A model generated the notes under the pieces. That model was not told the DNA's origin and made no database searches. It worked only from the letters and a program-made list of their open reading frames with translations. A DNA stretch of 64,000 nucleotides from Hyaloraphidium curvatum SAG 235-1 (Eukaryota; Fungi; Monoblepharomycota): the NCBI GenBank assembly GCA_025558095.1, contig JAIVFI010000016.1, positions 1 through 64,000 of the forward strand, given 5' to 3'. Below are positions 8,789-32,870 of the stretch, in pieces; position 1 is the first letter of the stretch, and each line of letters begins with the position of its first letter. The translations under genes and the position numbers were made by a program.

Positions 8789-9319
8789 ATGCTCCGCGCA
8801 GCCGCCGCTCTCGCCGCCCTGCTGCTCACCCTCGCAGTCGTCGCCGCGCCCGCCGCCGCAGCACCCTCGCCGCAGGCCCTGTTCCGCCGCTCGTGCGCCG
8901 AGTGCGACGCCGACTTTTTCTGGTGATGCCCGCCGCGCTCGCCCGCCGACGCCCCCGCTGACACCGACGCTCCCGCCAGCGAGTTCGCCTTCCCCGGCGC
9001 CCGCGAAGGCCACGTCGCATGCGTCGCCTACGCCCCCGGGGGCCGCCACCTCTACCGCCGTTACGAATCCGTCTTCACGCCCTGCCCCATCGTCCCCTGC
9101 ACCTTCACCGTCGCCTCGAACCCGGGCTACCTGCCCCAGGGGGAGTGCGTCAAGCAGTGCGCGGCGTCGGCGACGTGCGTCGCGGCGCTGGAGAACCCGG
9201 TGGGGTGCAGGCTGCTGAGCGCCATGAGCGAAAAGGGCGCGCCCAACATCATCGAGGGGATGCTGACGGTCAAGGGGACGACGTGCCCGGCGTTCGACGG
9301 GCCGTGCCAGCCGAACTGA
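8789..9319 (+). CDS. Secreted Cys-rich protein: LYRRY module plus PAN/apple-like domain (family member 1)
   Basis: Signal peptide MLRAAAALAALLLTLAVVA. Intron 8923-8979 splits a Cys codon (TG|C), giving LFRRSCAECDADFFCEFAFPGAREGHVACVAYAPGGRHLYRRY, then CVKQCAASATC..C..KGTTCP. Confidence 0.85.
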
Positions 9320-9910
9320 TCGCCCGCGCGGGCCGAAGGTGGGGTGCGTATCGGGTGACAAGGGTGGCTGCTCATAATGTGTGCATCTAGTTGAACAGCT
9401 GGCGGCTCGAAACAAAAGCAACGTCGGGGCAAGAGACCCGAAGGCAGAGCACGTGAAAGCAGGGGCATTGTAGTAGAGTGCTCTTATTCGAGCCATCTCC
9501 CCGTGCCATCGTGGGCCAGGCGGGGGAAATACACCGTTTGAAGCTGCCTTTGAGTGCCCTGCCGCGACGGATCGATCGGATGCCTTCGGAGCGCGGGCGG
9601 CACGGCGGACAAACAGCGTCTTCCCTTCCGCTCCGCCCTGCCGCCGGCCGACCGCACCTGACCGCCGCTTGACCTAACGCCCCGCTGCCGCCGCCCACCG
9701 CCGCGGAAGCTGAATGAGGCGTTCCGCACGGCCTCCGCCCCGCCCGCCGTCTCCGCCTCCGCGCCCCCGCTCCGCCGCAACGGCACCGCACGCTCCGCCG
9801 CTCCGCGAGAGAAAAAGCGCCCGCGCGCCCCGGACTTGACCGCCATCCGGCGACCCTCCTACCACTTTGCACCTACTATTTAAGCAACCTTCAAGGCTGG
9901 CGCACCCGCG

Positions 9911-10678
9911 ATGCCCGCGATTCCCGCCATCTCCTACGACACCGTGCTCCCCGGCCGCCCCGACGCCCCGGCGCTCCTCGCCCGCTGCCGCGCCGAGCTG
10001 CTCGTCCCGGCTTTCGGCGACGGCGACCTCGTCGACGCGACCGAGAACGTGGCGCCGCAGTACCTCGCCGACAGGCCCGAGGGGTCGCCGGCCGGCGCGG
10101 CAATCATCGCCTCGTGCGGCGGGAAGCTGGCCGGCTGCCTGCTCGCCGAGGTGTTCCCCGCCGCCGCCGCGTGGATCGTGACTTACGTAGTGGTCGACCC
10201 CGGCTTCCGCGGCGCGGGCGTGGGCAAGGGCCTCTTCTCCCGCGCCGTCCGCGCCGCGGAGGGGATTGCGGGCGCGCACGCCGTCGCGTTCGCCGAGACG
10301 GAGGAGCACGCGGGCGGGGCTGCCGCCGACCGGTTCTATTTCCTCGCGCGGATGGGGTTCAGGAGGCTCGAGGTGGCCTACGTGCAGCCGCCGCTGGCGG
10401 AGGGCAAGGACAAGGTCCGGAACCTGCTGCTGCTGGCGCGGACCTCGGAGGGCACGGTGCCGGCCGCCAAGGTCGCGGCGTTCCTCTCGGCGTTCTACAC
10501 CGCCATCACCGCGGACGGGTGGAAGCGCGACGCCGAGCTGTCGGGGGTGATGGCCTCGCTGCGGGCGCGCAAGGCCGTGGCGGCCGGGCCGCTCATCCCC
10601 GAGCTCAAGAAGGACGACTTCCAGGGCCGCGAGGGGGTGGAGGCCATGGAGGCCGAGGCGCCGGCGCAGACTGCTTGA
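9911..10678 (+). CDS. GNAT family N-acetyltransferase (intronless)
   Basis: Acetyl-CoA motif A (YVVVDPGFRGAGVGKGL), then FLARMGFRRL and YVQPPL. Confidence 0.85.
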   Translation: MPAIPAISYDTVLPGRPDAPALLARCRAELLVPAFGDGDLVDATENVAPQYLADRPEGSPAGAAIIASCGGKLAGCLLAEVFPAAAAWIVTYVVVDPGFRGAGVGKGLFSRAVRAAEGIAGAHAVAFAETEEHAGGAAADRFYFLARMGFRRLEVAYVQPPLAEGKDKVRNLLLLARTSEGTVPAAKVAAFLSAFYTAITADGWKRDAELSGVMASLRARKAVAAGPLIPELKKDDFQGREGVEAMEAEAPAQTA

Positions 10679-11429
10679 TCGACTGCGGTGCAGCGGGGCT
10701 CGGGACGTGTGCCGGATCCCGGGGTGTTGGACTCCTCGCAAACGGAACACGGCTCCTCTCACGACTCCCATCGCCGTTGGCGCAAAGCATGTAGCTACTC
10801 AGCATGGCTATCAGCCGGCCTCCAACTATCGAAACGCGCGACCTGTGCCCCTGCGGGAACCCGAACAAGTTCGAAAGCTGTCACAAATGATGCTTGGATC
10901 AGTCGCTCCATTCGCGACTGCCCAGATGTACATGCATAGCTTCGCGCGCAGTCCCGCCCGTGCTCCTTCCAGTGCAGTAGTACAGTAGTACGCAACTCCG
11001 CCCCCGTTGCACCTGCTCCTGTAACAGCTCCTGCCGCCTTTTCGTCGCGGCGCACTTGCATAACAGCCAGCAGGTACTCGCACCCCATAGGCTTCTCTCG
11101 GAGACCTAGAAACGGGCGATCCAGTACGAGGGGAAGCTGGCGTTGCGCGGGGCTGGTGCGACGGTAGAATCGCCCCGCCGTCTTCGAATCGCGCCCCAGC
11201 GCCGACAAGGACCACAGGGTCGGTGGCGGAAGAGTCCGAGGAGTAGCCTCCTGGCGTTTGGGCGCCGAATTTTGGTTCTGGAGCCGTGGACGGGGACCGG
11301 CCGATCTCGGTTTTGCGCGGTGCGGACGCTTCAGCCACGCGATTCCCTTCGTGTTTGCACCCGCCGTCACCTAATCGCACCGCCGGCTCCTCCCCCGTTT
11401 CCGCAGCGCCCCCGCCCCCGCCGACGACG

Positions 11430-12967
11430 ATGCCCTCCCGGAAAAACCTCCCGACACTCTCGGTCGGCCTCGCCGCGCTGCTGCTCGCCTCCCTGGTCGC
11501 CCCCGCCCGTTCCGTCGCCGTGTGGGTTCGGAGCCCGGCCCGACGCCGTGCTTCCCGCACTTACCCCGTCTTCTGACAGCCCTGGTGGCGGCGCGGCGCT
11601 CGTGATCTACCGACGGGGGTGCGGCGAGTGCCCGGAGGAGGCGTACTGCGAGTTCGGCTACCCCGGTGCGCCGGAGGGGCACGTCGGTGGGTTCCTGCGG
11701 GGCCCCGGGGCTGCGACAGGCGTCCTGATCTGTACCTCGCAGCCTGCGTCGCGAACGAGATCGAAGCCTCGCACCAGCTCTACCGCCGCTACACCCAACT
11801 TGGTACGCCTTCGCCACGCGGCTGATCACTTCCATCGACTTGCTGATCGATGTTTCCCTTCGCTCCCTCCAAAGACTCCTGCACCGCGTCCGCGGGGCGG
11901 AGCCTCGTTGTGGCCAAGATCGGCGACGGCACCTTCGACATCACGCAGAACACCTCGGCCCCCCTGACGCTCGACTTCCTCAACCCCTGCGACTTCTCCG
12001 TGCGCCGCACCCTGGCTTTTGACACCACCGGATCCAACGCCTTCACCACCTGGGGCACGCCGCGGCCCAACAGTGCCCTGATTCACTCGCCTTCCCTCGC
12101 TTCCGGCGAGGAGTCGACCTTCCTCCTGGTCCCGGGTTATCCGAAAGAGTCCGGTGACGCTGGTACGGGTACGGAAGCCGATTCCGTCGCGGCGGTTGTC
12201 GTAGATCCCGATGGCACAGTCAGGATCCGGTTTACCTTCGGACCGGCATGGGGGATGGGGCGCGGCATCACCGGTGCCTTCCCCTACAAAGGCAACGACG
12301 GATCGTGGAGGTTCGTCGGCAGCGGCTTGGACGGATTGGTCTCCTGCAAGCTCGACGGGACCGGCTACGAGGTCGTCCCCGTCGCTGGTCAGGACGCCCG
12401 CGGGTTCGCAGAGGACGATCGCGCGCCCATGTAGGTCGCCCTTTGCGTCTTGCCTGTGAGCAAAATGACCCGAGCACTTGAACCAGTTGGACGACCGCGG
12501 GCAGATCCGGTCTCAGGTTCATATTCCCCGCCTACAGGTCCTCAACGCCTTCCAACGGCGCTAGCCCGCTTTCCGGGCGCAACGGCGCGCAGTTCCTCTT
12601 CTGGCAATCTACCGAAGGCGGTGCCTATGATACCCTCTATTTTGCCGACATCAACGCGGCGTCTGCCAGCCCCTCCTTCGGCGGCGTGCAGAAGTGGACC
12701 CGGACCGCGACCTCTCCCGAAGCTTGGACTCGTCAGGCCAGGTTCTTCCCGTCGACGACCGCAGCAGGGTGCCGCGGCTTGGCCGTGTACCGGAACGGCA
12801 CGGACGTCGTCATCCTCACGACGACGGCCGAGACCGCGCCCAACAGGCTGATCCAGTTCATCGATACGGGCTACACCGGCGATACGGCCGTCACCGACTT
12901 CGAGGTCAAGGTGCCGGCCTCGCCGGGGATCGCCCTGCAAGGGCTGGCTTGGATCGTTCAGGAGTGA
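11430..12967 (+). CDS. Secreted protein: LYRRY module plus bacterial-type propeller-like domain (family member 2), 4 introns
   Basis: Signal peptide, then IYRRGCGECPEEAYCEFGYPGAPEGHV|ACVANEIEASHQLYRRY. Downstream: LVVAKIGDGT, FLLVPGY, DTLYFAD..GGVQKW, RGLAV, LIQFIDT. The frame is continuous after removing GT-AG introns. Confidence 0.8.
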
Positions 12968-13082
12968 GGCGTGCCCACTCTGCGGTGGTTACTGTTGGCG
13001 ACGAGAAGGGGATCTGCTGTTGGACTCTATCTTCTGTGTCAAGATGCACTACAGCTCGTAGAACTCGACGCCCTCGTTGCAT

Positions 13083-15026
13083 TTAGTACTCGAGGTCCTG
13101 CCCGTTCCAGAACGCCCCGTGGAACCCGAACCCGACCACGTGCCGCCCCGCCTCCGTCCCGTCGAACACGCACCGCGCCACCTCCTCCATCCGCGCCGCG
13201 TCGAGCACCACCAGCGCCGACGACGTCCTGGCCGCGTCGAAGCACACCGTCAGCAGCACGCCGTCGTCCTCCTCCGTTGCGCCGGGGCGCGGGACGAAGA
13301 TGGGCTCGGACGGGTACAGGCCGGGGGCCGACCAGGTCGTGCTCGTGTAGGCCTTGGCAATCGACTGGTGGGCCGTGGCGTCATTAGGCCCGGTGCGAGA
13401 GCGGCGGCAGAGCACAGAGACCCACCATCTTCTTGATCCCGGAAAACAGCCACACCTTCCCCTCCTCCTCTTCCCCCTGCGCGAGCGCATACACCCACCT
13501 CAGCCTCCCCGTCCCCGCCAGATCGGGATGGAACCTCGCCAGCTCCACCCCCGCCCCCGGATGCAGTACCTCCGGCACCACCCCATCCTTGACCCTCGCC
13601 ACCGCGGTCCCGGGCACGTCGTACCTCCCCGGGTCCGGGAACACGTACCGCCGCACGTCGCCGAACCGCGCCTGGCCCAGCTCCACGGTGCGGCGGGCGG
13701 TGCTCCGGACGAGGGAGGCGTCGTCGTAGCCGATCAGGGTGAGGACGAGGGAGCCGTCGGGGGCGTCGTAGGCGTCAATGGTGTCTGCGGTCGAATGGGA
13801 GATCGCTGGTAAGGTGTTTGGAGGTCCAAATGGAGCGGGAGACGCACGGAAGCACCACGCGGCGGGCGCGGTGTACAGGGCGACGAGGCGATTGTGTTTG
13901 CGCGAGATGAAGGCGAAGGTGGTACCCTTGCTGGGATCCCACTTGTAGGCGCCGACCAAGCTCCCGTGCCTTGAAGGGGGGCGGTAAGCGATCGTCCGGC
14001 ACCCATGCCTGTGCCGCCCACCAGAAGATACCCAGCCCGGACCCGAGATGGTACGGCCAGAACGGCATCACCACGAAGCGGTCCGTCATCGCGAACGAAT
14101 GAATGTAGGTCGTGGTGGGAGGCGTAAAGGACGCGATGATCTTGCCCTTGGGATCCTCGAGCGTCGTCGACAGCACCGTCATCTTCGGCGTCCCGCCGAG
14201 GGACATGGTGAAGTTGACCCGCTCCCCCGTCTTGAAATCGATCTGCCCGTGCGCGGCGCTCAACGGCCCCGGACCCATCTCCCGGTTCAGGTCCTGGTAT
14301 CCGTACAGCGCGACGGGCTCGAGGGTGACGGGGTCAAGCTGCTGCAGTTCGTTCACGTCCGTCTTGACCACCAGCGTGCGGGGCATCCCCGGCGCGGGCT
14401 TGCCCGGGGGCGGCGAAGGGATGGGAAAGTCGGGGGACACGGTCACACCGACGTTGCCGGAATCAACGGGCCGCTTGCTGGCCGGCGGCTGCGGGTTGGT
14501 GAAGCGGCTGTAGAATGACATGAAACGGCCGAGGAGCGAGACGCAGGGGTCCGTCTCCTGTCCGAACGAGACGGGCAGGCCGCCCTCGCGGCGGATGAGC
14601 TCCTCGACGCCCTTGGCCGTGTTGCGGTTCCGGTACAGGACCTTCTGGTCGGGCGTGATTTCAAATCGGTGGATTTGGCTCTGCGGCGGCCTTCAGCGGG
14701 ACCAACTGGGGTTTCGAGACAAGGAAACCCACGAGCCCGTCGAACCAGTGCGAGATCGAGTGCTTGGCCCGGCCCGTCTTCTTGGCCGCCTCGGGAGACA
14801 GTTCGACGTCGTATGTCCCCGGTCCCGCGCGGTACAGCACGCCGCGGAGCCACGTCGGCAGCTCCCCGCGGACGGCGAGCTCCACCGGCGCGGTGACTTC
14901 CGGGTTGTTGCGGAGCGCCTGGGCAAAGGGCGGCGGCGGCGGGCGCTGGGCGGACGAAGCGGGCGACAGCGCCGCGGCGACGTGGGCGACGCGGCGGCGC
15001 GCAGAATCGGCGTCGGAGTTCGGCAT
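13083..15026 (-). CDS. Carotenoid oxygenase (RPE65/CCO family), multi-intron
   Basis: GELPTWLRGVLYRAGPG, HWFDGL, SAAHG, YIHSFAMT, PSEPIFVPRPGATEEDDGVLL and GFHG; the iron-binding His residues are present. Confidence 0.92.
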
Positions 15027-15271
15027 TGCTGCGGTTCGGAAAGGAGCCGGCGCGGCCTTTTGGAGCTGGGCGACGGGCGACGCACGGAGCGTCGGCCGCG
15101 ACCCGGCGAAAGGCCCAATCTCCGTCCGGCCACAGCCACCTGGACGCAAGCTGGAGCATCCGGGTTGCCATCGCATCGCGATTCGACCGAGCTCGTGCGG
15201 CATGAAGACGGATAGCATTGCAGGAGTTTACAGATCGGCGTCTTCAAGCATCCCGGAGGGTCAGCAGGGGA

Positions 15272-16109
15272 TCACGGGCACTGTCCCGCCGGGCACGCCC
15301 CCTTGCTCCACACCACGCCGCCGGAGTAGGTTGAGGTGGCTCCTATGGAGCTGAAGTGGTAGCACCCCTGGGGGCTGGCGTTGTAAAAGAGCCCCTGGCA
15401 CGTCGAGTTTGCGGTGCACGACTCCCTGCACTGGGTCGCCGTCATCTCGGTGGAGGCGAATATCTGCGTCGAGCAGAAGAATTCCGGGACCTTGGCGCCG
15501 CAGTCCTGCATCGGGCACGTCGTACCCGGGCAGCTGCCCCTGGTTCTCATGACGGTGTTGGCAAAGAACGGGTCCGCCGGCTCCGAGGCACCGATGGCCC
15601 CGACCGTCGCGTAATGCAGGCACTTCTGTGGCAAACCGACGGGTTCGGCCCAGAGAAATCCGGCGCAGCTCGGGTCCAGGAAGCAGTCCATCTCGCACCC
15701 TGCCTCGTTGGTGTCCTTGGTGCGGAGTTCGGCGGAGCAGGACGCCCGCGGATAGCTGGTGCCGCATCGTACGAACGACTCGAACGGCGGGTCAGTATAC
15801 CGGCGGTACAGGGAATGTCGGTCGGCTGTCTCTGACACGCAGGCGACGTGGCCGGCGGGGCAGCCTTGGTAGGAAAACTCGCTGCGGGCCGAGGCGGTCA
15901 GCGCCCATCGCGACATCGGCATCGCCGTCCCACCAAAATTCGTAATCCTCGCACTGGGCGCACGAGCGGGCACACAGGACGCGGGGCTGGGCGGGCGCGG
16001 CGCCGGCGAGGCTGCGGTGCGGCGGGTGAGCGGTGCGCGGCGGGCCAGGCGGGGCCACCTACGCAGGGAAGAGCGCCGCCACGAGGGCGGACGCGGCGAG
16101 CGGGAGCAT
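15272..16109 (-). CDS. Secreted protein: LYRRY module plus two PAN/apple-like domains (family member 3), 2 introns
   Basis: MLPLAASALVAALFPA|LAG..LCARSCAQCEDYEFC|EFSYQGCPAGHVACVSETADRHSLYRRY, followed by two CxxxCxxxxxCxxF..C..(K/R)GxCP units. Confidence 0.85.
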
Positions 16110-16157
16110 GAGCGCTGTTTTTATTGGCGTTGGAGGTGAGTTCGTTTGGAGTTGTGG

Positions 16158-16186
16158 GAGTCACGCGCGGAGTCATTCGGGAGTCA
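16158..16186 (-). promoter_or_regulatory. Three TGACTC (Gcn4/AP-1-like) cores upstream of member 3
   Basis: GAGTCA at 16158, 16170 and 16181, which is 50-80 bp upstream of the ATG at 16109. Confidence 0.35.
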
Positions 16187-17254
16187 CAACCCTGAGGACC
16201 CGTTGGCTGTGCAGTCCGACCGATCGCTCGAGCCGGCACGTGTCACATTAGTTTCTCGTCGTCTACCATAGCAACATCACGTTTCATTGCCGCACGATCC
16301 AAGCACGCCCTTGGAGCGCGGCCGATCCACGCGGCTTGTCCGGGAAGGACGTGACCTGCACCGCGCTGCCCATGTTCTTGTGTCACATGACGAAAAACCC
16401 CAAATGCCTGCCTGTAAAGTGTTTTGGCGGTCGTTGTTCGAGCATGACGCCGTCCATGACGAGAGCGGCCGGTGCGCGGCCCGGCGCCTCGCCACCGGCG
16501 GCGGGCGGCGGGGCGGCGAACGGGGCGGATCGACCTCCCAGACGGATGACACTGCACGACATCCCCTATTGTCGATGCCCGCGGTTCGGACGGTCCTCGC
16601 GCGCCGCAAACAAGCGCGCTTCGGTCACGGCGGCGAGATTCGTCCGTCCCTCGAACCAGCCCGGCATGGGGTTGCGTGCGGCAAGTCGTCCGCCCACGTC
16701 GGGGAACTGCTTCGGCGCCGACATCGCCCAATCCCCGTGCGAATCTCCATCCACGGGCCGGTCATCAACGAATCCTGTGCCGTCGCCTCGTTTTCTCGCG
16801 ACACGGTGGTCGGTCACTAGCCACCCGCGGCGGCTTCTGCCCTCACTCCCCGACCGCGCTCCCGAACTGCAGGCGGCGCTCCCAGCCCCTCCAACGGGGC
16901 GTCTTTTGTCGCATTGCGTGCCTGTCCCAAGGTGATGTGCCTCGATGGCGCTGAGGTTTCGCCCGGCGGCGGTTTCACGGCGGCAACAACGCCGCCCGCC
17001 ATCGGGACCGACGTGCCGCACGCCGTCTCCGAACGCCCCGCATCGCATCGCCAGCCCGTGAGGAGCGCGTCCGATGCACTCCAAAAAATGACGCGCAACG
17101 GATGGCTGCCGTCAGGTCCGTCCCCGGGGCGATCGGCTCGTGCGCGGAACAGCGGGCCGACTTGGCGGCCCGATTTTCGATCGGGCGGCTGCCGCCCACA
17201 ACAAGGGAAATCGAGGGAACCGGCAAACTCGCCATCCCCCCGCATCCCTCCGCG

Positions 17255-17979
17255 ATGGCCCGAACCCTCACCTTGACGGCCTTTGTCTTGGCGTTCGCGC
17301 TGCTCGCCGGCGCGGCGCCCGCGGGCACGTGCGCCGCGCTCGCCCGCGAGGGCCCTATCGGGTGCTGACCTGCCGCAGCGCGCCCGCCCCCGCAGGTCCC
17401 GCGGTGCTCTTCCGCCGCAGCTGCGGGGACTGCCCCTTCGACGCGTACTGGTATGTGCCGATCGGGACCCGCCCGCCGCCCGCGCCCCGGACCGCGCTGA
17501 CCCACCCGCCGCCACCCGGCCGCTCCCCCACCCCCCGATCCCTCGAACCACCGCCCGCCGTTCCCCCGCCATCCAGCGAGTTCGGCCACCCCGACGCCCC
17601 CGAGGACCACGTCGCCTGCGTGGAGCAGACGCAGGAGGCCTCCCACGCCCTGTACAGGCGCTACGACACCTCCGACCTCTACTACAACTGCACCACCCTC
17701 CCCGGCTGGGAGCCGGGCGTCACCTGCGGCACGGCGACCGCAGCGAGCAACCCCACGGAGATCATCGACGTTGCCAACGTGGCGGCATGCAGGAAGATCT
17801 GTGACGAGGAGCCGACGTGCGCGGTCTTCTGGCTCATCGGGGCCAGTCCGGCGTCGTGCTTCTGGTACACGGCCGCGCAATGCACCACCCGCTGCAACAG
17901 TGGTGCGGAGGACATCTCCTTCCCGTTCAAGAAGACCCTGGGATCGTGCCCGAGCACGAACTGCACCGCTTCCGGCTGA
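17255..17979 (+). CDS. Secreted protein: LYRRY module plus PAN/apple-like domain (family member 4), 2 introns
   Basis: MARTLTLTAFVLAFALLAG..LFRRSCGDCPFDAYC|EFGHPDAPEDHVACVEQTQEASHALYRRY..CRKICDEEPTCAVF..C..GSCP. Confidence 0.85.
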
Positions 17980-18316
17980 CGGTCAGGTGCAGCGCGTTTT
18001 GCGGGAGCTGGCAACCAACACGAACGGGCAGTGCCACGGGGTGGCACACACCGGCCGCTGCCTACATCCTCGGGTCCGTCCCCAGCCACCGCCGCATCCC
18101 ACCATTCCCCCTGCCCGTCCATCCACACCCTCCGTCCTCCTCCAGCAGCCGCGTCAAGCAGGGCGACCCGCACCCACTCGCCGCCCTGCCCCCCCTTCCT
18201 CCGCAGGGCCGGGGCATTCCGGGTAAGGCAGCGTCCTGGCACGTCACCGGGAGTGACCATGCCGCAGCCGCGCATCCGCACCCGCCTCCGACCCCGAAGC
18301 ACGCCCGGCCGGGCCG

Positions 18317-19813: not shown

Positions 19814-19851
19814 TTGTCGGGAGGGACTCTGGGTTTGTGGGTTGACGCTAG

Positions 19852-19945
19852 CTAAGCCCGAATTCCTCTGGTATCGACCGGGCCTTAGCGAGCATTTCTC
19901 TGGTATCGACCACACTTTAGCCAGCATTTCCCTGCTATCGAGGGG
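19852..19945. promoter_or_regulatory. Three ~32-bp direct repeats in a 155-bp divergent intergenic region
   Basis: ctaagcccgaattcctctggtatcgacc / cttagcgagcatttctctggtatcgacc / tttagccagcatttccctgctatcgagg. Confidence 0.6.
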
Positions 19946-19968
19946 TGTCTCCCGCTGCCCGCCTCTCG

Positions 19969-21786: not shown

Positions 21787-22039
21787 GTCGGCGCGACGTC
21801 CACTGCGAAGGATTGCCGAAGACGTATCGAATGCCGCCCTCGTAGCATTCAAGCGCCTTTTGTTGGGCGATTGTTGTCAAGGACGATGCCGACCGACGTG
21901 CGGGCCTACAGTTCCCACGCTGACACACCCCATTCACCGTCGCCAAGGAGCCATGGAAACCACGCCCATCGGGATAGCCGCCTACGATGGCAGCAGCATG
22001 GATTTAGGTTAGAGCGACGGTCATACGCAAGTACGCTCT

Positions 22040-22272
22040 TTTCGCGCCTTGATTACAAGGGCAATGGCTGGGGCTGGCCCGAAATCGGTGGGATTGGTGA
22101 AGTGCTGGATCCGGGTGCGGGGGTTCTCGAAAGACGCTGGGACACCTCGTTCATTGTCATTTTGTCCAGGATCTACGTTCACGATTCTTTTCGTTCGCCG
22201 GAGGGTGATGCGACAGAGGCAGAGAACAGGGACCTATTCGACGAACCCGTGTGGGACGACGCTCCGTTTTAG
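22040..22272 (+). pseudogene. 3' remnant of TRAF-like gene (end of MATH domain)
   Basis: GNGWGWPEI..VLDPGAGVLE..RIYVHDS..EPVWDDAPF* matches the C-termini of the three larger paralogs. No RING or zinc-finger part lies upstream. Confidence 0.65.
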
Positions 22273-22429
22273 GCAACCCAATTGCTGTACTATAGGATTC
22301 GCAAGCAATAACCGGATGCGTAGTGACGCGCTGTCCGGTCTTGCCCTACTCGCTTCCTTGTCCCTCGATGGTCGAGTCGGGTGCGGTGCGACCGCCAGAT
22401 CACCGTTTCGTGCCACCCATCCTCGAACA

Positions 22430-23487
22430 ATGTCCCGTTCCTCCGGTCCTTCGCGCCACCGTAGCCCTCCTGGCGGCCCCTCCGGGGCCTCTGCCTCGCG
22501 CTCCGACGATCTCGTCGAGGTCGTCTTCGTGCAGGACCGGGCGCCGTCGTTCCGCTACCTCCGCGGCAGCCTGGTCGCCCGGGCGCCCGGCTCCGTTTTC
22601 ACGCACCATTTCGGGCCGGACGGGGTCAATGCCGGCAAGAGCTCGCTGCCGGACACGTACACGGTGGACAGGGACAGGGATACATTCCGCCGGTTCGTGG
22701 ATCCGTACCTCCGCGGGTACCCTGCCCCGTCGGCGGAAGACCTCGCCGCTCTGACGCATCGCGTAGGACGCGGCATTCTACGGGCTGCCGGACGAGGAGT
22801 TCCGCCTGCCCGAGCCGGGCCCGCCGTGGGCCGAGTTCGACCTCCCGGGGGTGAGGTTCGTCACCTGGGCCGAGGCGGCCGAGATCGTCGCGGGCCTCGA
22901 ATGGAAGGACAACCGCGCGGTGCTCCCGTGCAAGTTCGCCATCGTGACGAAATCGGACTACCTGTTCAGCTACCGCGTCCGCTTCCAGGACGACGAGGAC
23001 GCCGCGGAAGTCCCCTGGGACGCCAAGCCCGTGCCGGCCTACATCAACGTGCCGAACTGGATCAGCACCAGGCACGAGGCTCCTTCCGAGCGGGGCTTCT
23101 GGAAGCGTCTCGGAGAAGCCTTGGATCGAGCGGGCCAGCGGGAAAAGGACTGCTCCCCTTTCTTGTTGCACCGTTCCTCACGTCGAGGACCTGGTTTGGA
23201 CCGCAATTGTCAAGGGAGCCACCTTCCCGGAGATCGAGATCGGCCCCAACGCGATCGTGCCCGACAAGAATCTTGTCCTTGGCTACGTCACGGCGGTGAT
23301 GCGTCAGCCTTTCGTCTTCTTTGACATTCGCACGATGGTCGACGACGAAGACGGTCACTCGCAATGCTTCGTGGAAGCCATCTACCCCGACCACCATACG
23401 ATGAGGAGTGCCAGCACCACCAAGATGACCCCACTTCTGACGAAGCTCGGCAACCCGATGGAGAAACCCGCCGGCGTGGAGGGGTGA
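22430..23487 (+). CDS. BTB/POZ (KCTD-type) domain protein, exon structure uncertain and possibly disrupted
   Basis: YTVDRDRDTFRRFVDPYLRG..DAAFYGL is a BTB signature. The frame changes near 22765 and 23160 without clear canonical splice donors. Confidence 0.55.
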
Positions 23488-23799
23488 TCGGGCCCGCCAT
23501 CGCGAAAGCACACGGGGATGGCAAGAATGACAACGTGTCGTAGCGCAGAAGAGGCAGTTTACTGATCAGATATGCCGAGAGCTTGTCGCCTCGTCCTGTC
23601 GCCCGGTCGACGAGCTGACGATCGTCGGGTCAGGTGGCGGAGCAGCGCCTCGCCGCAGCAAGCGCCCTCAAACTCCCGACCTGCCGGACCGGAATGGACT
23701 CTTTGCCGGCCCGTCGGAGGGCACGATGACCACTATTATTGCCTTCGCTCTCGGCTAGCGCCATTTTCGGACGGCGGAGGGTGTTTTGACTGCCCCGCC

Positions 23800-24765
23800 A
23801 TGTCGGCCGCGACGTGGATCGTCTCGCTCATCGCGTGCGCAGCGGCGGCCGGCATCGCCTTCACCATCTTCTACTGCACGCGCACGACGCTGCGGCCCGA
23901 GGCGCCGGCGGAAAAGGCGACCGAGCCGGAGGACGGCGGCGACCTCGAGGGCTCGTTCCGCTCGCTGTCGCCGCCGCCGTCGACCGGCGAGTGGGTGCCC
24001 GACGGGCTGCGGACCGATTTGCCGGCGCGGACGCTGGAGGGCGAAAGGGACGTGCTGTCGCTGTACGCCGCGTCGGCCGAGGGCTCGAGGGCCGGCACGC
24101 CGGGGGGCTACACGCTGCCGGCCGCCTACTCCCTGCGGGCCACCAACCAGGCCGCCAGCACCCTTCCAGCGGGCTACTCGTTGCCGGCAGGCTACTCGCT
24201 CTCCGCCGACGAGCAGGCAGCCGCAGCAGCAGCCGCCGCCGGCCGCCAGGGCCGAAGCTACCTCTCCACTCCCTCTCCACAACCTCCTGCCCCTCCTCCC
24301 CAACCTCCCTCCCCGAACCCCCGCCAATCCCGCCGCAAACGCCGCCCGGACTTCATCCCCATTTCCTACTCCCGACCCCAGTCGCAGCCTCCCCCCGCCG
24401 GCGCCCCCCGCGGCCCATCTCCCGCGTATCCGGCGGCCTCGGAGCTCGGCGAGCCGGCGATCCTCGCGAAACCGCTGAGCCCGCCGGTGCCGCCGACGGA
24501 AATCTCGGCGGCGGTGCTGCCGGGGTACGACGCGAGGATGGGGCCGTTCGGGGCGGCGGCGCAGAGCACCATCGCGTCGGGGAGCGGGCTCCCTTCCGGA
24601 CAGGCGCAGGGGCAGGTGGAGAGGGGGAGGTCGACGCGCAAGGCGAGGAGGGCGAGGTCCGCGGAGAGGGCGGGGGAGCCGTCGGGGACGGCGGGCGCGC
24701 CGGCCGCGCCCGGACGGTCCACGACCGAGGACGCGCTCTACGATCTCTACGGGGACGAGACATAG
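23800..24765 (+). CDS. Hypothetical single-pass membrane protein with Pro-rich tail
   Basis: N-terminal TM segment (WIVSLIACAAAAGIAFTIFYC), repeated LPAGYS motifs, coding-like GC3. Confidence 0.65.
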   Translation: MSAATWIVSLIACAAAAGIAFTIFYCTRTTLRPEAPAEKATEPEDGGDLEGSFRSLSPPPSTGEWVPDGLRTDLPARTLEGERDVLSLYAASAEGSRAGTPGGYTLPAAYSLRATNQAASTLPAGYSLPAGYSLSADEQAAAAAAAAGRQGRSYLSTPSPQPPAPPPQPPSPNPRQSRRKRRPDFIPISYSRPQSQPPPAGAPRGPSPAYPAASELGEPAILAKPLSPPVPPTEISAAVLPGYDARMGPFGAAAQSTIASGSGLPSGQAQGQVERGRSTRKARRARSAERAGEPSGTAGAPAAPGRSTTEDALYDLYGDET

Positions 24766-24845
24766 GAGGCGCGGGCGAGAGTCGTTCAAGGTGCCCGTTA
24801 TCGGCAGTGTATGTTGAGGTCGCTACAGTACAGAGTTGCGGCTCT

Positions 24846-26268
24846 TCAGAACGGTGCGTCGGTCCACTCGGGCTCGTCGTCAAGGTTCTTGCTGCTCTTT
24901 ATGCCGGCGTCGTCTTCGGTCATTTTGAGCGAATTGTGGACGTAGATCCAGCACCGGACACCCAGGAAAGTAGTGTCGCCATGCTTTTCGAGGAACCGTT
25001 CGTTCGGGTCCAAGATCCTGGCCGCGGCGCCGAAAGTCTGCCATCCTCGACCATGCGTTCTCGTGATCAACGCGCAACAGGTTTTGGCCGGCGGAGAAAT
25101 CTTGCTCGAGATCAACTGAATCTTCATCTTCACCTGAGCCCAAGCGTGATCGGCCGCGGCGGTGAGTTGCAAAAAGAGCCCCAACCTCGTGCCGTTGAAC
25201 TCCGCCCTCAGCTCCCAAGTCAAGCCGTTGGCAAGGAACGGTAACGATACATAGGCGAGACCGTTGCCGCCATTGAACACGAAGGAGCGTCCTTCGCAGT
25301 CGTCGGGCAGCAGGCTCGGAGGCAGGTGTGCACACAGGCTGCCCTTGTACCCGATCGGAATCCGCACGACCGTGCAGCACGAGGCTTCCAGCTTCATCTT
25401 CAAAAGGTCTACCTCGTCGCGGTGTCGCGAGAGCAAGGAATCCTCGAGGAGGCTGATGCGCTCCTCGAACTTGACTGCCATCCGTTCCTCAAGCTTTGAC
25501 GTTTCGGAGACCATCCTTTCCTCGAGCTCCGAGACCCTCCGCATGAACAGCTGCAGGTGGTCCTCTACAGCGGACTTCCGGTGCTCCGAATGGGCGTCGG
25601 CAGGTCCCTGCCACGATGATTCCGAATCAGATCGAAAGCCCTCGTTCTCGGATTGACCGAAACGAGCCCACCTTGAACTCGCACAACGGGTAGCTGCACG
25701 ACACAATCCTCTTGGGGCAGTCCTCGGTGTGGCTACCCGCGTCCTTGCGCGCAACTTGGACATCGCAACCCTCGTTCACACATGCGACCAGACCAGACTC
25801 GCACGACTCTTCCTGGTGCCTCTGCCGGCCCACACGTGTCACAAGACGCGTTCAAGCGCACGGCCCGGCATGCTGCCCACCTCCATGGTGGCCGGAGCCT
25901 CCACGGTCTCCCCGCACAGGTTGCACCTCAGACTCGAGCAGGCCACCTTGTGCCCGTCCAGATCCTCAAAGCCGACCACCTGTTCCGCAACCCCACGGGC
26001 ACGACACGGGGTATCTTCGGAGCACCTCCCAGAAGGCCTTGTCGTTCTTGACCGATTTTGCCTCGACCCATTTCGCGCGGCAGCAGGGACACTTGCGGTC
26101 CGCCCGCCTCTTGTTCTTCTGCAGCGACGCCACACATCCGCGGCAGAAGAAATGCGAGCACGCGTTCTTGCCCCTGTTGCCGCACAGGTACACGGGGTCG
26201 GCGCTGGGCAGGAGTTCGCTGAGGCAGACCGGGCAGGTCGCGAAAGGCGCGTCGCCGGGGGCGAGCAT
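24846..26268 (-). pseudogene. TRAF-like RING + TRAF zinc fingers + coiled coil + MATH protein; 1-nt frameshift near 25982
   Basis: RING CPVC..CSHFFCRGC..CPCC. TRAF fingers H..SC..VACVNEGC..H..DCPKRIVSCSYPLC. MATH TWEL..GRGWQTF..ILDP..FLE. The frameshift is inferred by aligning CPWGCG|QVVGFED with paralog CPFGCGGRVAIED. Confidence 0.75.
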
Positions 26269-26782
26269 CGCGGGTGCACGGGGCGGGGGGGATGCGCGCG
26301 CCGACAAGAATGGGAAAGCCACGAGTTCGGCGGTTCGCGTGTCGAGAGACACGCCGGGGCGGCGGGGCGATGGTCCTTTCCGCGAGCCAAGTTGGGGGGA
26401 CAATGGCCAGCTGCATCCGCGGTGGCAATACCGACGGCGGGCAATCCACAGGCCTTGCTAGTTCTTAGGTCTACATGTAACCGATGCGATTCAAGATATC
26501 ATCCATCAGTCATCATTCCTCGATGAGATGGCTTGGTGCGAGTGAACAGCTCAGGACGAAGTCAGGATGAGAACCAGCGCTGCAGGGACGATAATTGGCC
26601 AAAGCTGGTCGCCATCATTGCCAGTTGGATGATGCACGGGTCCCGACAGTGCAGCTTTGTGGCTTCGATCCGGCATTTGCCGGCCGGCGGAACAATCGGC
26701 GGGGGACACTCCGTGGTTCCCCGCGCCACCGGGCAAAGACGCGTCCATTCCCGCCGAATCCCGCCGCCATCGCCCGCACGAC

Positions 26783-27799
26783 ATGCTCCCAGTGCGATTC
26801 TCGCGCACGCCGTCTCTCTTCCCTCTGCCGCCCGGCATCGCCCGCACCATCCTCGCGACGCGGTCCGGCGCGCTTGAGCTGCTCTCCGCCCCCGCGTCGC
26901 CCTCCGCCGCCGTCTCGCCGCGACCGCACGTGCTCTTTGTGCACGGCGGCTTCGGATTCCCGGGCGTGTGGGTGCCGTGGATGTCGGCGCTCGCCGCGGC
27001 CGGGTACGCGTCACGTGCAGTCGGCCTTCGTGGACATGGGGCGAGCTGGGGACCGCCTTACCTCAAAATGTGGATGGGCACGACTGCAAACATGCTGGCA
27101 GAGGACGTGGCCGCCGCGGCCAAGGACGCCGAGGCCGCGGAGGGCTCGCCGCCCGTGCTGGTCGGCCACAGCTCGGGCGGCGGTCTCGTGCAGTGGGTGC
27201 TCGGCAACGGGATGGCCAGAGCCAAGGCGATGGTGCTGGTCGGCGCCGTCCCGCACTTTGGCTCCATGGGCGTCTATCGGAACTGGTTCCGCCTCGACCC
27301 GTGGTTCATGACCCGGAGCCTATTGCACCTGCAGCACCCTCGCTCCCCCCTCTCTTCCACGCGGCTGGTCAAGGCCGCCTTCTTTGGGCCCACCTTCCCC
27401 GACGCCGAGGTGCGGGAGTTCGAACGCTGGATGCCAGAGTACGAGAGCCTGGCGTGGCCGCTGGCCATGATGCGGCCTTTCGTCTCGGCGGGCGAGGTGG
27501 TCGCCAGCATCGAGCCCACGCCAGAGGGCGTCGACGCGGACCGCGTGATGATCCTCTCCGGCACGCTGGACCGGCTCATGGACCCTCCGATCCAGCTCCG
27601 CGCTGCGGAGGAGTACAGGCTCGCGCTCGGGGGCGCCGGGGCGCCGTTCGACGACAAACTGCCGGCGCAGGGATGGCGCGTGCAGCGCCGGGGCGGGGTT
27701 TCGTACGGGCTCGTCGCGGGTGCGGGGCACCACGTGCAGAACGACCTGCAGAAGGAAGAGGGGGCGGAGGCGCTGCTGCAGTTCCTGGACAGGCTGTGA
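26783..27799 (+). CDS. Alpha/beta hydrolase (Abhydrolase_6-like), intronless
   Basis: LFVHGG, LRGHGAS, nucleophile GHSSGG, GTLDRLM and GAGHHVQND. Confidence 0.9.
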   Translation: MLPVRFSRTPSLFPLPPGIARTILATRSGALELLSAPASPSAAVSPRPHVLFVHGGFGFPGVWVPWMSALAAAGYASRAVGLRGHGASWGPPYLKMWMGTTANMLAEDVAAAAKDAEAAEGSPPVLVGHSSGGGLVQWVLGNGMARAKAMVLVGAVPHFGSMGVYRNWFRLDPWFMTRSLLHLQHPRSPLSSTRLVKAAFFGPTFPDAEVREFERWMPEYESLAWPLAMMRPFVSAGEVVASIEPTPEGVDADRVMILSGTLDRLMDPPIQLRAAEEYRLALGGAGAPFDDKLPAQGWRVQRRGGVSYGLVAGAGHHVQNDLQKEEGAEALLQFLDRL

Positions 27800-27856
27800 A
27801 AACGCACAGGGTTGTTGGACTTCAATGCAAGACGCTGCGGTACAGTTCGGGGCTCC

Positions 27857-29053
27857 TCAGAAGGACGCCTCGGTCCACTCAGGCTCGTTGCTGAGGTCCA
27901 TCGTCTCGGATCCATCAACCTCGCACGACTGCAGGGAATCGCGAACGTAGATCCAGCACCGAGCGCTCAGGAACGTGACGTCGCCTCGCGTTTCGAGGAA
28001 TCCTTTCCCTGGGTCCAGCAACCGGTCCTTCGCAATGAACTCGGGCCAGCCAAACCCCCAGCCTCTGACAATGATCGCGCGAAGAACTTGTTCGGTTGGA
28101 GAACGATCCTTGCTTGATATCAATTCAGCCTTCCACTTCACTTGCGCCCAAGCATAGTGCCCCTCGATGGAAACGCGCAAGTAGGGCCCCATTTTCGTGC
28201 CACTGAAATCTGCCTTCAGCTCCCACGTCACGCCACCCGAAAGGCATGGCAACGAAATGAATACGGCGCCAACACCGTCGTCCAGCCTGTAAGATCGCCC
28301 ATCTTTGCAATCGTCCGGCAGCAGGGTGGGAGGTAGACTCCCCTTGTAACCGATCGGGATTCTGACGACCGCGGAGCACGACGCCTCCAGCTTCGACTTC
28401 AGCAGCTTAACCTCGGCCCCGTGTCGCGCGATGACGCCGTCCTTGAGGCGTTTGATCTCGGCAGCCATCCGGTCCGCGAACTTGCCCGTGATCCGCTCCT
28501 CAAGCTTGGCAGCATCCGCCGCGGTTCGACCTCAGCGCCCGTTCCTCGACGTCCAACAGCTTTCTCATAGCAAGCCGGAGATGCTCTTTTCCGGCGGCCT
28601 CCTCGTGCTCCTGCTGGGCATCCGCGGGTCCCTGCCAGGTGGGCCTTGTCATGCACAGAATGGCACACCCCGAGCCGGAAAGCTGCCCACCTTGTGCTCA
28701 CAGAGCGGGTAGGTGCACGAAACGATCCTTTTCGGGCACACGACGGCGTGCACGGCCACGTCCTTGCGCGCCACCGGCACCTGGCACCCCTGGTTGACGC
28801 AGTCGACCAGAGCAGCCTCGCAGGATTCTTTCTGGTGCCTCTACCAGCCCCAGAGGATCAGACGATGTGACCGAGATCGCTATGTGCAGCGCCCACCTCT
28901 ATGGTGAGGGGAGGTGGCACGCACGCTCCGCACAGATTGCACGCACACTGCGTGGCCGCCCGCGCCGCAGAGGTACACCGGGTCGGCGCTGGGGAGGTTC
29001 TCGTCCTTGCAGACCGCGCAGGTCGTGAAGGGCGCTTGGGCTCTGGCGTCCAT
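27857..29053 (-). pseudogene. TRAF-like paralog with internal deletion of the RING C-half and frameshifts
   Basis: CAVC..LPSADPVYLCG jumps out of frame to CNLCGACVPPP near 28945. A second frameshift lies near 28525. The MATH part is intact and ends EPEWTEASF. Confidence 0.75.
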
Positions 29054-29553
29054 CGCGGTCGGAGGTGGGGATTGTAGCAGCACGCTCCGAAGGGAGAGAG
29101 CAGCGAGTCCGGCCTGGGCAAACAGAAACGCTCCGGTCGTGTGTCGCGCTTCGGTCGTGCGTCGGCTTTTGGGATCGGTGACGTGTAGCTTCGTGATTCA
29201 CCCCCGCTGTGCATCTGATCCAAATCACAATTGAGGTCAGCGGATGCCAGCGTGCCTTTGACTATTTCCTTGCTCTTTGATTTTCGCGATATCATGTTGC
29301 AGTGAAGACAGCCTGCGGAGGCGTATGGATGAAAGGACCAGACCTGCTCTTCCAAGGCCGCCGTGCAACCTCCCCTTCTCCAATTAGAAAACTCAAGCGG
29401 AAGTCGTTTCCTCTCTCATCCGAAAGTGGATTCCCGGCTTCCGAGCCCGATCACCACATTGCGCAAGGGCACGTGTTGCTGGACCCGGCGCGGAAGGGAT
29501 TGTTTGGCCGACATCGCCGCTTCCCGACTGGGCCGGGCACCGGCTCCGTCGCC

Positions 29554-30603
29554 ATGGACCTCTCTTCGAGGACAATCACCGTGGACGACCTCCTGCTGAC
29601 CCTGCCGAAGGTCACCGTGCCGGAACCGCCGCCGACGGGGCTGCGGAAGGCGCGAAAGCGGGTCGAGGAAATCGTCGAACACCCCGCGTTCCAATGGACC
29701 GTGGTCGTCCTCATCCTGCTGAATGCGGTCATTCTGGGCTGCCAGACGTCGGCGGCAATACAGGCCGCGGCGGGGGACGCGCTGGACATCGTCGACCGGG
29801 TGCTGCTGGCCGTCTTCACCGTCGAGCTGGCGTTGAGGGCGTTCGCGATGGGATGGGGGTTCTTTCGGGATCCGTGGGTTCCGCCGTCTTCCTGGCAGCG
29901 GAATGTGCGCTGACCGCATACGCTGTCGGTCCCCAGGTGGTGTCTGTTTGACCTCGTGATCATCTCTGTCTCGTGGGTCCCCGCGGGGGACACCCTGTCC
30001 GTGCTGCGGGCGCTCCGGACGCTGCGGGTACTCCGCCTCATCTCCGTGCTGCAGAGCCTCCGCAATGTGGTCGAGGCGATGCTCGCCGCGGTCCCGGGCA
30101 TGGCCAGCATCTCCCTCCTCCTCTTCCTCATGTTCTACGTCTTTGGCGTCATGGCCGTACCGCTCTTTGGCGAGACGCAGCCCATGTACTTCGGCACCCT
30201 GGGAGACTCGCTCTTCACCCTCTTCCAGATCATGACCCTCGAGAACTGGTCCGAGATCGTGCGCGAGGCCATGTCGCAGCACTGGTACGCCCTCCCCTTC
30301 TTCCTCCCCTTCATCATCATCTCCACCTTCGTCATCCTCAACCTGTTCATCGGCGTCATCGTCGACTCGATCCAGAACATGCACGAGCAGCGGGCCGCGG
30401 CGGACCCCAAGATGCGCGCGGCCGAGGCGCGCAAGCGCGCCGAGGCGGACAACACGCGGAAGCTGCTGGAGGAGATCAGGGCGCTGCGGGCAGGCAACGC
30501 GCTCGGGAAAGAGGGGGACGTCGAGACGCTCAGCCCGTCGCCGGGGCCGGGTGCGGAGAGCGGGCTGGCGCCGGCGCCGAGCTCGCGGAGGGCGTCAAGC
30601 TGA
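29554..30603 (+). CDS. Single-domain 6TM voltage-gated cation channel, BacNav/CatSper-like; one intron 29874-29936
   Basis: FFRDPWCLFD, S4 VLRALRTLRVLRLIS, pore FTLFQIMTLENWSEIVR, S6 ILNLFIGVIVD and a C-terminal coiled coil. Confidence 0.92.
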
Positions 30604-30848
30604 ACAATGGGCGCGGGGCGTTCTCCATGACGGGCTAGAATTCCAGGGTCATCTGTACAGCGATTCAATGATACCTTTATCGTCGATTTAAATGGCCGAT
30701 CTCGGGACAGAAACGAGCAACAGTCGACGAAGTCATTTGACGGGCGGGCGGGCGGGAGCGAAGAAAGCCGCCTGCAACCCGAACGCCCACATTCCCCCCC
30801 GGTCGCCCCTCACTCGTCCCCCCCCTACCGCACGTTACAACACCCATC

Positions 30849-31670
30849 ATGGTGGGCCTGACGCCGGCCTTCGCGGCCCGTCGCGGGCCGCCCCGGGGAA
30901 CCGCCAGCTCACGCTCCCGCGTCCTTTTCGTGTCGCTCCTCTCCAATGCCCTCCCTCCTCCCCTCCGCCCTCCCTCTCTCCTGTACGCCCGTACTCCGTT
31001 GTGCCCGCAGTCTGGAAAGGGCGGCGGCAAGTCCGGCAAGTCCGGCAAGGCGGGCGGCGAATCCAAGAGCAAGTCGCGCTCGTCCCGCGCCGGTCTCCAG
31101 TTCCCCGTCGGCCGCATCCACCGTCTTCTCCGCAAGGGCAACTACGCTCCCAGGTGAGATGCGGGGGACACTTAGGAAGGAGGACAGGGGTTTTTCGGAC
31201 CGCTCCCGGCCTCGGCTCGTAGGAGATCTGCCTTTTCTCGAACTGACGCAATGCCCCGTCCTCCTCCCCAGGATCGGCTCCGGTGCCCCCGTCTACCTCG
31301 CCGCCGTGCTCGAGTACCTCGTCGCCGAGATCCTCGAGCTCGCCGGCAACGCCGCCCGCGACAACAAGAAGTCCCGGTTCGTGCGACGCCCCTTCACGTG
31401 CCGCCGACGAGGTTCCCTGATTGCGCCCCTTTCCCGCAGCATCATCCCCCGTCACCTGCAGCTGGCCATCAGGAACGACGAGGAGCTGAACAAGCTGCTG
31501 GGCAACGTGACGATCGCGCAGGGTGGAGGTGCGGTCGGGCCGGGGCGAGTCGTCGGGGCGTTCTAACTTTTCGTCCTTTGCGGATGCGGCCGGCAGTGCT
31601 CCCCAACATCCACTCGATCCTCCTGCCCAAGAAGAGCGGACCGAAGAAGGGAGCTTCGGTGGAGGAGTAG
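30849..31670 (+). CDS. H2A: Histone H2A, 4 introns
   Basis: [57 protein letters not shown] and VLPNIH. Confidence 0.97.
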
Positions 31671-32253
31671 GCGGGGTCGGGGGACCATCAGCTGGCCGCA
31701 GGAGGCACAGGCCCGGAGGATCAACGCGGAATGGCCACGAAGGAGGATTCAAGTGCGAAGGAATGGTGGGCCAGGTGGATTGGGCTGCATTTTCGGTGAA
31801 TGAGGACGGATGGATCGTTCGGCATCTCTGCGTGTCTTGCCCGCACCCATCGATCTACGTCCCGTCCACGCAAGGCGCACCTAGCGGGCGTCGACGTCCG
31901 AGCGAGGAGCACTCGGCAAGCCGAGGATCGGATGGCTAACAAAAGCGAGATCGGAGCGAGCCGCGGGCAACCATCCGGGCTGGTGCGACGGTGTCAGGCC
32001 GAAGTAGGGAACCCCGAAATCCCCGGTATCTCTTCCCGTGCATTTCTTGATTTAACCGGCCTGAAGGGCATCCAACAACGTGCACGGAAGCACTGTGGAG
32101 GTGGCCCAGCCAGCGATCTGAATCGTCGATGCGACCTGGCGGTTCGACAGGTTCGTGCTCGTTGCCCTGACTCTTCCCGTCCTCCGCTCGGGGCACTGCG
32201 CCCCTCTATCCCTCATCCAACTCACCACCAGCAACGCACACCAACACGCCACC

Positions 32254-32870
32254 ATAAAAGGCACCGCCAAGCCCGCCCTCGCTGTGTTCTTGGCCGCCGC
32301 CGTCGTCCTCGCGGCCTTTGCAGGGTCAGTGCTCCGCTGCTGCCGGACCCGCCCCGAGGCCTGATTCTCTGTTCCCCATGCTCGCCAGGTCTGCCGTGGC
32401 GGCCCCCGCGGGGGAGTCCCACGTCCGGTTCGTCCGCTCCTGCTCCGAATGCGACGTCTCTTCGTTCTGGTGCGCCTGCCCGCTGTTCGCCGCTCGGCGG
32501 ACGCAGCTCACCCTCCCCCCTGCAGCGAGTTCGCCCACCCCGGCGCCCCCGCGGGCCTCGTCGCCTGCGTCTCGCACGACGCTGGCCGCACCGCCCTGTA
32601 CCGCCGCTACGCCTCGGGCTTCACCTCCGGCGGCGCGCAGAAATGTGCGGCCTCGGCCTGGCGCCGATCGCCGTCAGCGCCCTCGCCCAGTCCGCGTGCG
32701 AAGCGTCGTGCGCGGGGGATGGGTTCTGCGCGGGGTACATCCATATCGCGGGGAGCGACTTCTGCATCACGTTCAGCGCGATCGGGGGCAAGGCGCCGGC
32801 GGCGGGGTACACGATGATGGTCAAGGGTACCTGCCCCGGGGACGTCAGCCCGAGCGAGTGCCCTGCTTGA
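32254..32870 (+). pseudogene. LYRRY-module secreted protein (family member 5): start codon lost and frameshifted
   Basis: gccaccATA stands where ATG is expected, ahead of a signal peptide. FVRSCSECDVSSFC|EFAHPGAPAGLVACVSHDAGRTALYRRY follows. The frame shifts near 32646 before CEASCAGDGFC..KGTCP. Confidence 0.75.

Follow-up and report, generated by a model that had tools for sequence, protein, structure and literature searches.

A lineage-restricted four-cysteine domain, a proposed common leader of unrelated, predicted secreted proteins in the fungus Hyaloraphidium curvatum

The yeast alpha-factor leader consists of a signal peptide and a pro-region that aids export from the endoplasmic reticulum (ER) and that Kex2 cuts off at a site of the L-x-K-R type. 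In the Kex2 consensus, P1 is almost always Arg, P2 is Lys or Arg, P3 is free and P4 is Leu or another aliphatic residue, and the known Kex2-processed pro-domains (K2PPs) are, as a rule, short stretches that lack structure and show no conservation from one protein to the next (PMC8528282). Here we describe a family of genes in the freshwater fungus Hyaloraphidium curvatum SAG 235-1 in which a conserved module with four Cys residues stands between the signal peptide and a variable C-terminal part, the payload. We propose that the module is a new protein domain family, restricted to one lineage and used as a common leader. The window from which this analysis started is a stretch of 64,000 nucleotides (nt; positions 1 to 64,000, forward strand, of contig JAIVFI010000016.1, assembly GCA_025558095.1), in which an original prediction, made from the letters alone, had named five dispersed genes that share the module. 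A six-frame motif scan of the window found E-F...V-A-C-V followed by L-Y-R-R-Y at all five of these places, at 9050(+), 11778(+), 15811(-), 17650(+) and 32596(+) (members 1 to 5), and direct reading located the upstream C-x2-C exon, [x]-R-[S/G]-C-x2-C-x5, at the expected place in every one of them.

Size, conservation and lineage restriction of the module family

A profile of 31 positions, covering the half of the module that lies in exon 2, gave at least 148 matches in the 32-Mb H. curvatum genome (150 of 251 candidates were scored). A strict DNA motif (A-C-[V/I], 7-14 codons, L-[Y/F]-R-R-Y) matched the genome 114 times and a reversed control not once, which, together with the 148 profile matches, excludes a chance origin of the motif. 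The family therefore comprises about 150 genes genome-wide, labelled merely 'hypothetical protein', and extends far beyond the five genes of the window to which the original prediction had been confined.

The anatomy of the module was counted in 86 proteins, with denominators that vary from position to position. It reads F-x-R-S-C-x2-C-x5-C-E-F...V-A-C-V, then a spacer and L-Y-R-R-Y. The four Cys, the Glu that follows the third of them (Cys3) and the Ala that precedes the fourth (Cys4) are invariant or almost so, and Cys2 and Cys3 are separated by five residues in 69 of 76 cases, whereas the spacer from Cys4 to the final motif varies between 7 and 14 residues. Of the 86 proteins, 78 have the complete L-Y-[RK]-R. 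Aromatic residues are conserved throughout the core (F3, F/Y15, F/Y18, Y20, Y33, Y42 and Y45), which carries a net charge of -2 on average. The module had been proposed to hold a CxxC plus HxxC metal pattern, and the four invariant Cys, with their CxxC pair, do favour either such a site or a Cys4 zinc site. The 'His' position did not bear this out, however, since it is occupied by His in only 31 of 86 proteins and otherwise by Ser (22), Gln (9), Arg (7), Ala, Pro and others. The Cys spacing also differs from the two-knuckle zinc-ribbon pattern, and the secretory pathway is oxidising, so that Cys pairs within it normally become disulfides. We regard a metal site as very improbable.

Modules start at a median position of residue 34, and a signal-like hydrophobic stretch, as judged by a hydrophobicity heuristic, precedes the module in 68 of 69 N-terminal members. 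Nine further modules appeared to be internal, but in eight of these a Met and a signal-like stretch lie directly upstream, indicating that the gene models concerned are over-extended. Mean pairwise identity between modules is about 53% regardless of payload, compared with about 30% between payloads of the same class, in agreement with the earlier proposal that the module is better conserved than what follows it.

In many copies the module is interrupted by an intron within the Cys3 codon. The reading frame enters 33 modules from 30 loci as S-E-F or S-E-Y, because the AG of the intron and the final base of the Cys codon are read through, while about a dozen copies lack this intron. The original prediction held that the intron hides the family from a list of open reading frames. 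This is true of a minority of NCBI models, which read through it, while the majority splice the Cys3 intron correctly, with P0023 (member 1) and P0009 (member 2) among the correctly spliced models. In P0073, P0075, P0076, P0080, P0082 and P0087 the intron is read through, mis-spliced or contains the start of the model, so that the modules look truncated.

No described domain was found to correspond to the module, as the original prediction had suspected. Eight modules gave no Pfam match with E below 0.08, the PDB chains contained no sequence match at E up to 10, and we did not find the family described in the literature. Word-based homology searches returned no match for the module region of member 3 and, for a complete intronless member, only the NCBI entry of that same protein (an H. 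curvatum 'hypothetical protein'). In these searches the window genes were represented by their single exons, and the full-length proteins analysed were those that the searches returned. A HMMER profile of 47 positions, built from ten uninterrupted modules, gave 87 matches at E <= 0.001 among 1.84 billion representative proteins. The origin of 33 of these was traced: 31 are NCBI entries from H. curvatum, one (P0083) is a repeat-protein false positive and one (P0086) comes from a metagenome. P0086 is encoded on ENA ERZ28614139 scaffold_242474 (L063), a contig of 954 nt with 66% G+C, and its payload is similar to those of P0004 and P0005. Here too a phase-2 intron splits the Cys3 codon, yet the contig has no DNA match to the H. 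curvatum genome, which points to a related but different organism, unsequenced or uncultured, that also has the family. Two degenerate DNA patterns gave no match among JGI metagenome contigs, a weak negative because each pattern fixed one Glu codon. On the sequences searched and the 33 matches traced, the module family appears to be confined to this lineage.

Several features of the genomic distribution were recorded. Contig starts are enriched in copies: 34 of the 148 profile matches lie within 60 kb of the first base of a contig, compared with about 15 expected (a hand count that covers starts only). The window itself begins with coding sequence rather than telomere repeat. Tandem groups also occur, among them one of six copies at C28:1.6-17.3 kb, one of three at C17:634-636 kb and one of four at C34:29-53 kb. 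The loci C17:634855-637974 (L021) and C47:80323-83442 (L022) are 99.96% identical across 2.6 kb. C47 is a small contig and probably repeats a portion of C17, being either a haplotig or a duplicate made in assembly, which makes raw copy counts slightly too high; C30:62498 and C48:18047 resemble each other in the same way. Spread as a mobile element was considered and rejected, as the DNA similarity of dispersed copies extends over only about 200 nt of the module, at 66-72% identity.

Payloads and predicted structure

To describe the payloads, 82 of at least 30 residues were clustered by BLASTP at E <= 1e-5. This gave 39 clusters. The largest, with 14 payloads, is PAN-like, the next, with 12, is also Cys-rich, and a third has 7; smaller ones include Cys-free beta-rich, Stig1-like, EGF and NHL-propeller payloads. 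Pfam recognises EGF, Stig1, NHL, PAN, thioredoxin, leishmanolysin and other families, none of them in more than three members, and assigns no family to most payloads. The number of clusters and the diversity of the Pfam families indicate that the payloads, as sequences, are not homologous to one another, and the module proved to be the portable N-terminal unit that had been proposed from five genes.

PAN/apple domains had been assigned to four of the five payloads in the window, and this assignment deserves moderate confidence. Member 3 matches PAN_1 (E 1.8e-6), with its second domain at 28.1 bits compared with a cut-off of 21.4, and member 1 comes close with PAN_3 (E 6e-4, 20 bits compared with a cut-off of 21.1), whereas the PAN matches of member 4 are weak and member 5 has none in Pfam. 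The predicted structure of the member 1 payload consists of a sheet and one helix (residues 100-107), consistent with a PAN fold. Its nearest PDB folds are an Eimeria PAN module, MANEC, the TgMIC4 apple domain, and the plasminogen and HGF N domains, with Foldseek probabilities of 0.94-0.99 but E values of 0.19 or more. The likeness to PAN/apple domains (Pfam PAN_1 to PAN_4) is one of payload only, seen in members 1 and 3 and in at least about 14 further family members. That the module is itself part of the PAN fold was rejected, as NHL, EGF, Stig1-like and Cys-free payloads stand behind it as well.

The payload of member 2 has no Pfam family, and a sequence search with it recovers only the protein itself. 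A language-model atlas links it (11875-12967) to uncharacterised bacterial proteins from Verrucomicrobiota and Actinomycetota with a score of 0.93, and it may be a captured bacterial-type domain. Within the Cys-free beta-rich group (P0002 and P0031; L038:1396-2037 and L039:1369-2058), a second, internal L-x-R-R is followed by A/G-P and may be a second convertase site. Across the family, module similarity is weakly linked to payload class, with 11 nearest neighbours of the same class compared with 4.5 expected, a result that neither shows nor excludes payload swapping.

Member 1 was modelled by AlphaFold2 with the family alignment, giving a mean predicted local distance difference test score (pLDDT) of 86.8 and a predicted template modelling score (pTM) of 0.58; the low pTM beside the high pLDDT suggests two independently oriented domains. 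The module is predicted to form three short strands (residues 30-33, 44-47 and 57-60), and the coil that follows (61-76), which holds L-Y-R-R-Y, has a pLDDT of 74-79 between blocks of at least 90. A model of the module by itself has the same three strands, with a pLDDT of 79-89 in the core and 56-64 in the motif tail. When this fold was compared with 48,161 chains by a search independent of Foldseek, the best matches were three-stranded peptides of the defensin type at Z <= 3.0, which on these models is a common arrangement and not evidence of kinship.

These matches nevertheless bear on the possibility that the module is itself the product, a defensin-like, disulfide-rich peptide of about 40 residues cut from its carrier on both sides, since the nearest folds are helianthamide, cryptdin-4, crotamine and beta-defensins, and a dibasic pair stands on either side of the module in 37 of 86 members. 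The module shares with such peptides a small antiparallel three-stranded sheet and several Cys. However, the similarity is weak (Z only 2-3, a level that common arrangements reach), and the module has four Cys instead of six and always stands at the N-terminus of a larger protein. Its core is anionic, unlike the cationic defensins, and some 150 near-identical peptides on different carriers would be redundant. The N-terminal cut is also questionable. The original prediction had called the module 'dibasic-flanked', but the variable position of F-x-R-S-C is Arg in 28 proteins, Ala in 24, Lys in 14 and Val in 7, so only 42 of 79 have a dibasic pair on this side, where the conserved Arg falls in the first predicted strand. 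Both observations weaken the earlier suggestion of a released 38-residue peptide, which we consider improbable.

Proposed cleavage and alternative fates of the module

In the reading that we favour, to which we assign a probability of roughly 45%, the module, about 45 residues long, is an extracellular mini-domain specific to this lineage, which would act as a common pre-pro leader and be removed by kexin. Each protein would consist of a signal peptide, about ten residues, a folded three-stranded core, the spacer of 7-14 residues and L-Y-[R/K]-R-Y, with the core held together by its four invariant Cys, probably as two disulfides. A kexin-type convertase of the late secretory pathway would most likely cut after the second basic residue and thereby release the variable payload. 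Before this cut, the folded core would assist many unrelated payloads in folding, ER export or sorting.

The final motif agrees well with the Kex2 consensus. Leu occupies P4 in 83 of 85 proteins, P2 holds Arg in 74, Lys in 9 and hardly ever another residue, and P1 is Arg in 79, while Tyr is found at P3 in 77 and at P1' in 82. The C-side dibasic pair, which the original prediction had already taken for a kexin site, is thus a good predicted one. The restriction of Lys to P2 is what Kex2 specificity predicts and, together with the variable spacer, the lower-confidence coil and the retention of the motif irrespective of payload, argues for a linear recognition or cleavage site. That the motif and its flanking Tyr residues are kept with any payload likewise speaks for recognition rather than for packing against the payload. 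The genome is well provided with candidate convertases: 11 matches to the proprotein-convertase P domain exceed the Pfam cut-off, at about nine loci (C21:106766, C33:286159, C17:596445, C36:442214 and others). Yeasts typically have a single kexin, fewer than the number of P-domain loci here. In H. curvatum, introns interrupt the kexin gene. No other dibasic site is present in 62 of 82 payloads.

Three observations weigh against removal by kexin. First, dibasic sites are not depleted from the payloads (33 compared with 18.9 in shuffles), although this count is uninformative as a test of exposure to kexin. Second, the module is predicted to be folded and is highly conserved, unlike the known K2PPs, so that a cleavage site cannot be all it provides. 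Third, Kex2 does not require the invariant Tyr residues at P3 and P1', which could mean that the motif is structural or is read by another partner.

In the main rival, the module is retained by the mature protein, where it would bind or anchor as a small domain, for instance on a common partner or a polymer of the cell wall, and display varied adhesive payloads (PAN, EGF, NHL and beta-sandwich) at the cell surface. L-Y-R-R-Y would then be part of a binding or cross-linking surface and would not be cut. The confidently predicted core fold and its conserved aromatics recall small carbohydrate-binding modules (CBMs), the payloads are chiefly domains of the binding type with few enzymes among them, and the Tyr beside R-R is conserved beyond the needs of Kex2. 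Yet the module has no CBM or other binding-domain match by sequence or fold, and binding would hardly account for the restriction of Lys to P2. Moreover, an exposed dibasic pair that lies in a flexible spacer and has Leu at P4 is expected to be cut in a Golgi that contains kexin (PMC8528282); exposure of R-R was judged here from secondary structure and confidence values only. We think permanent retention of the module somewhat doubtful.

In a bolder extension of the kexin-removed leader, the module would be a folded address tag, carried by about 1% of genes, and would direct its payloads to dedicated processing or sorting, with receptor-mediated ER export or packaging followed by release by kexin. 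It would then be a domain-based counterpart of RxLR and PEXEL, in one early-diverging fungal lineage, repeatedly joined to new payloads. This is speculative, and we consider it unlikely.

If the module is indeed a removable leader, one folded unit serving dozens of cargo folds would amount to a natural, ready-made secretion leader, and the family would show how a lineage can build a large secretome by re-use of a single N-terminal unit. H. curvatum, a fungus of the Monoblepharidomycetes that lacks a flagellum and has hardly been studied, is not known as a pathogen.

The window genes and comparison with known systems

All five window genes carry the module, as originally described, though with two departures from the shared pattern in members 3 and 5. 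A phase-2 intron in the Cys3 codon had been proposed for four of the five, and direct reading places GT..AG introns of 52-126 nt after the second base of this codon in members 1, 3, 4 and 5. RNA evidence was taken from the contigs of one public run, compared over 6,000 letters spanning members 2, 3 and 4; the run is regarded as RNA because its contigs are spliced and carry adapter ends.

Member 1 (8789..9319, + strand) encodes 157 residues, identical to NCBI model P0023, with a signal peptide, the module (8876-9064, from sequence reading and the motif scan) and one PAN/apple-like payload; its phase-2 intron in the Cys3 codon lies at 8923-8979. Member 2 (11431..12967, + strand), of 431 residues in NCBI model P0009, has a signal peptide, the module (11602-11792, from sequence reading) and a payload of about 345 residues. 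Its Cys3 codon is uninterrupted, and an intron at 11687-11742 lies instead within H-V|A-C-V; the others are at 11522-11579, 11803-11874 and 12431-12486. The second and third of its introns (11687-11742 and 11803-11874) were confirmed as GT..AG joints in RNA contigs. The NCBI model splices out the last one (12431-12486), whereas the sole RNA contig that covers it still contains it, and keeping it would terminate the protein at the stop codon at 12432-12434.

Member 3 (15272..16109, - strand) has a signal peptide, the module (15797-15980) and two PAN/apple-like domains. Here A-R replaces R-R on the N side of the module, which also contains two extra Cys. Its introns are predicted at 16012-16062 and 15882-15933, the latter splitting the Cys3 codon in phase 2. 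An RNA contig spans 15237-15882, where the alignment stops at the predicted acceptor (15882). In member 4 (17255..17979, + strand), a signal peptide and the module (17404-17664, from sequence reading) are followed by a single Cys-rich, PAN-like payload. Both of its introns, at 17329-17378 and, with phase 2 in the Cys3 codon, at 17451-17576, are present as GT..AG joints in an RNA contig with a depth of about 140, which confirms the proposed splicing for this member directly.

Member 5 (32254..32870, + strand) is probably defective. Its module (32426-32610), which has Leu where other members have His, and its introns (32325-32388 and, with phase 2 in the Cys3 codon, 32470-32525) are recognisable. 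However, the start that had been placed at 32254 is ATA instead of ATG, no ATG lies in frame upstream of it, and a frame change at about 32615-32650, with no space for an intron, is required to reach the Cys-rich C-terminal part. These defects suggest that member 5 is probably a pseudogene or an assembly error. Between members 2 and 3, a spliced gene on the minus strand (13110-15117) is covered by an RNA contig with a high depth of about 159. Its four CT..AC joints (13365-13425, 13785-13847, 13969-14020 and 14681-14732) correspond to minus-strand GT..AG introns.

Among described systems, K2PP effectors (SnTox3, ToxA and SIX1/4/6; PMC8528282) resemble the family in having a signal peptide, a pro-region and LxxR, KR or RR directly before the mature domain, and in payloads that are often small and Cys-rich. 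The module shares the N-terminal position after a signal-like stretch and the terminal KR, RR or LxxR, but not the disordered pro-region, as its core consists of three predicted strands with a pLDDT of 79-89. Whereas the pro-domains of these effectors are short, mostly unstructured and mutually unrelated, here a single four-Cys domain recurs in about 150 genes, and the organism is a non-pathogenic, early-diverging fungus. The N-terminal leaders of effector superfamilies (RxLR and CRN in oomycetes, PEXEL in Plasmodium), some of which target the host, and conotoxin pre-pro leaders are similar in logic only. They too join a conserved leader and a short motif for processing or recognition to C-terminal domains of great diversity, with the cargo less conserved than the leader, but they are linear motifs or unstructured regions and not domains of the disulfide type, and have no sequence similarity to the module. 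The alpha-factor leader, finally, parallels the proposed role of the module in that it works with many different cargoes; it differs in belonging to one gene family, in a portability that has been used only by engineers, and in having no Cys-rich fold.

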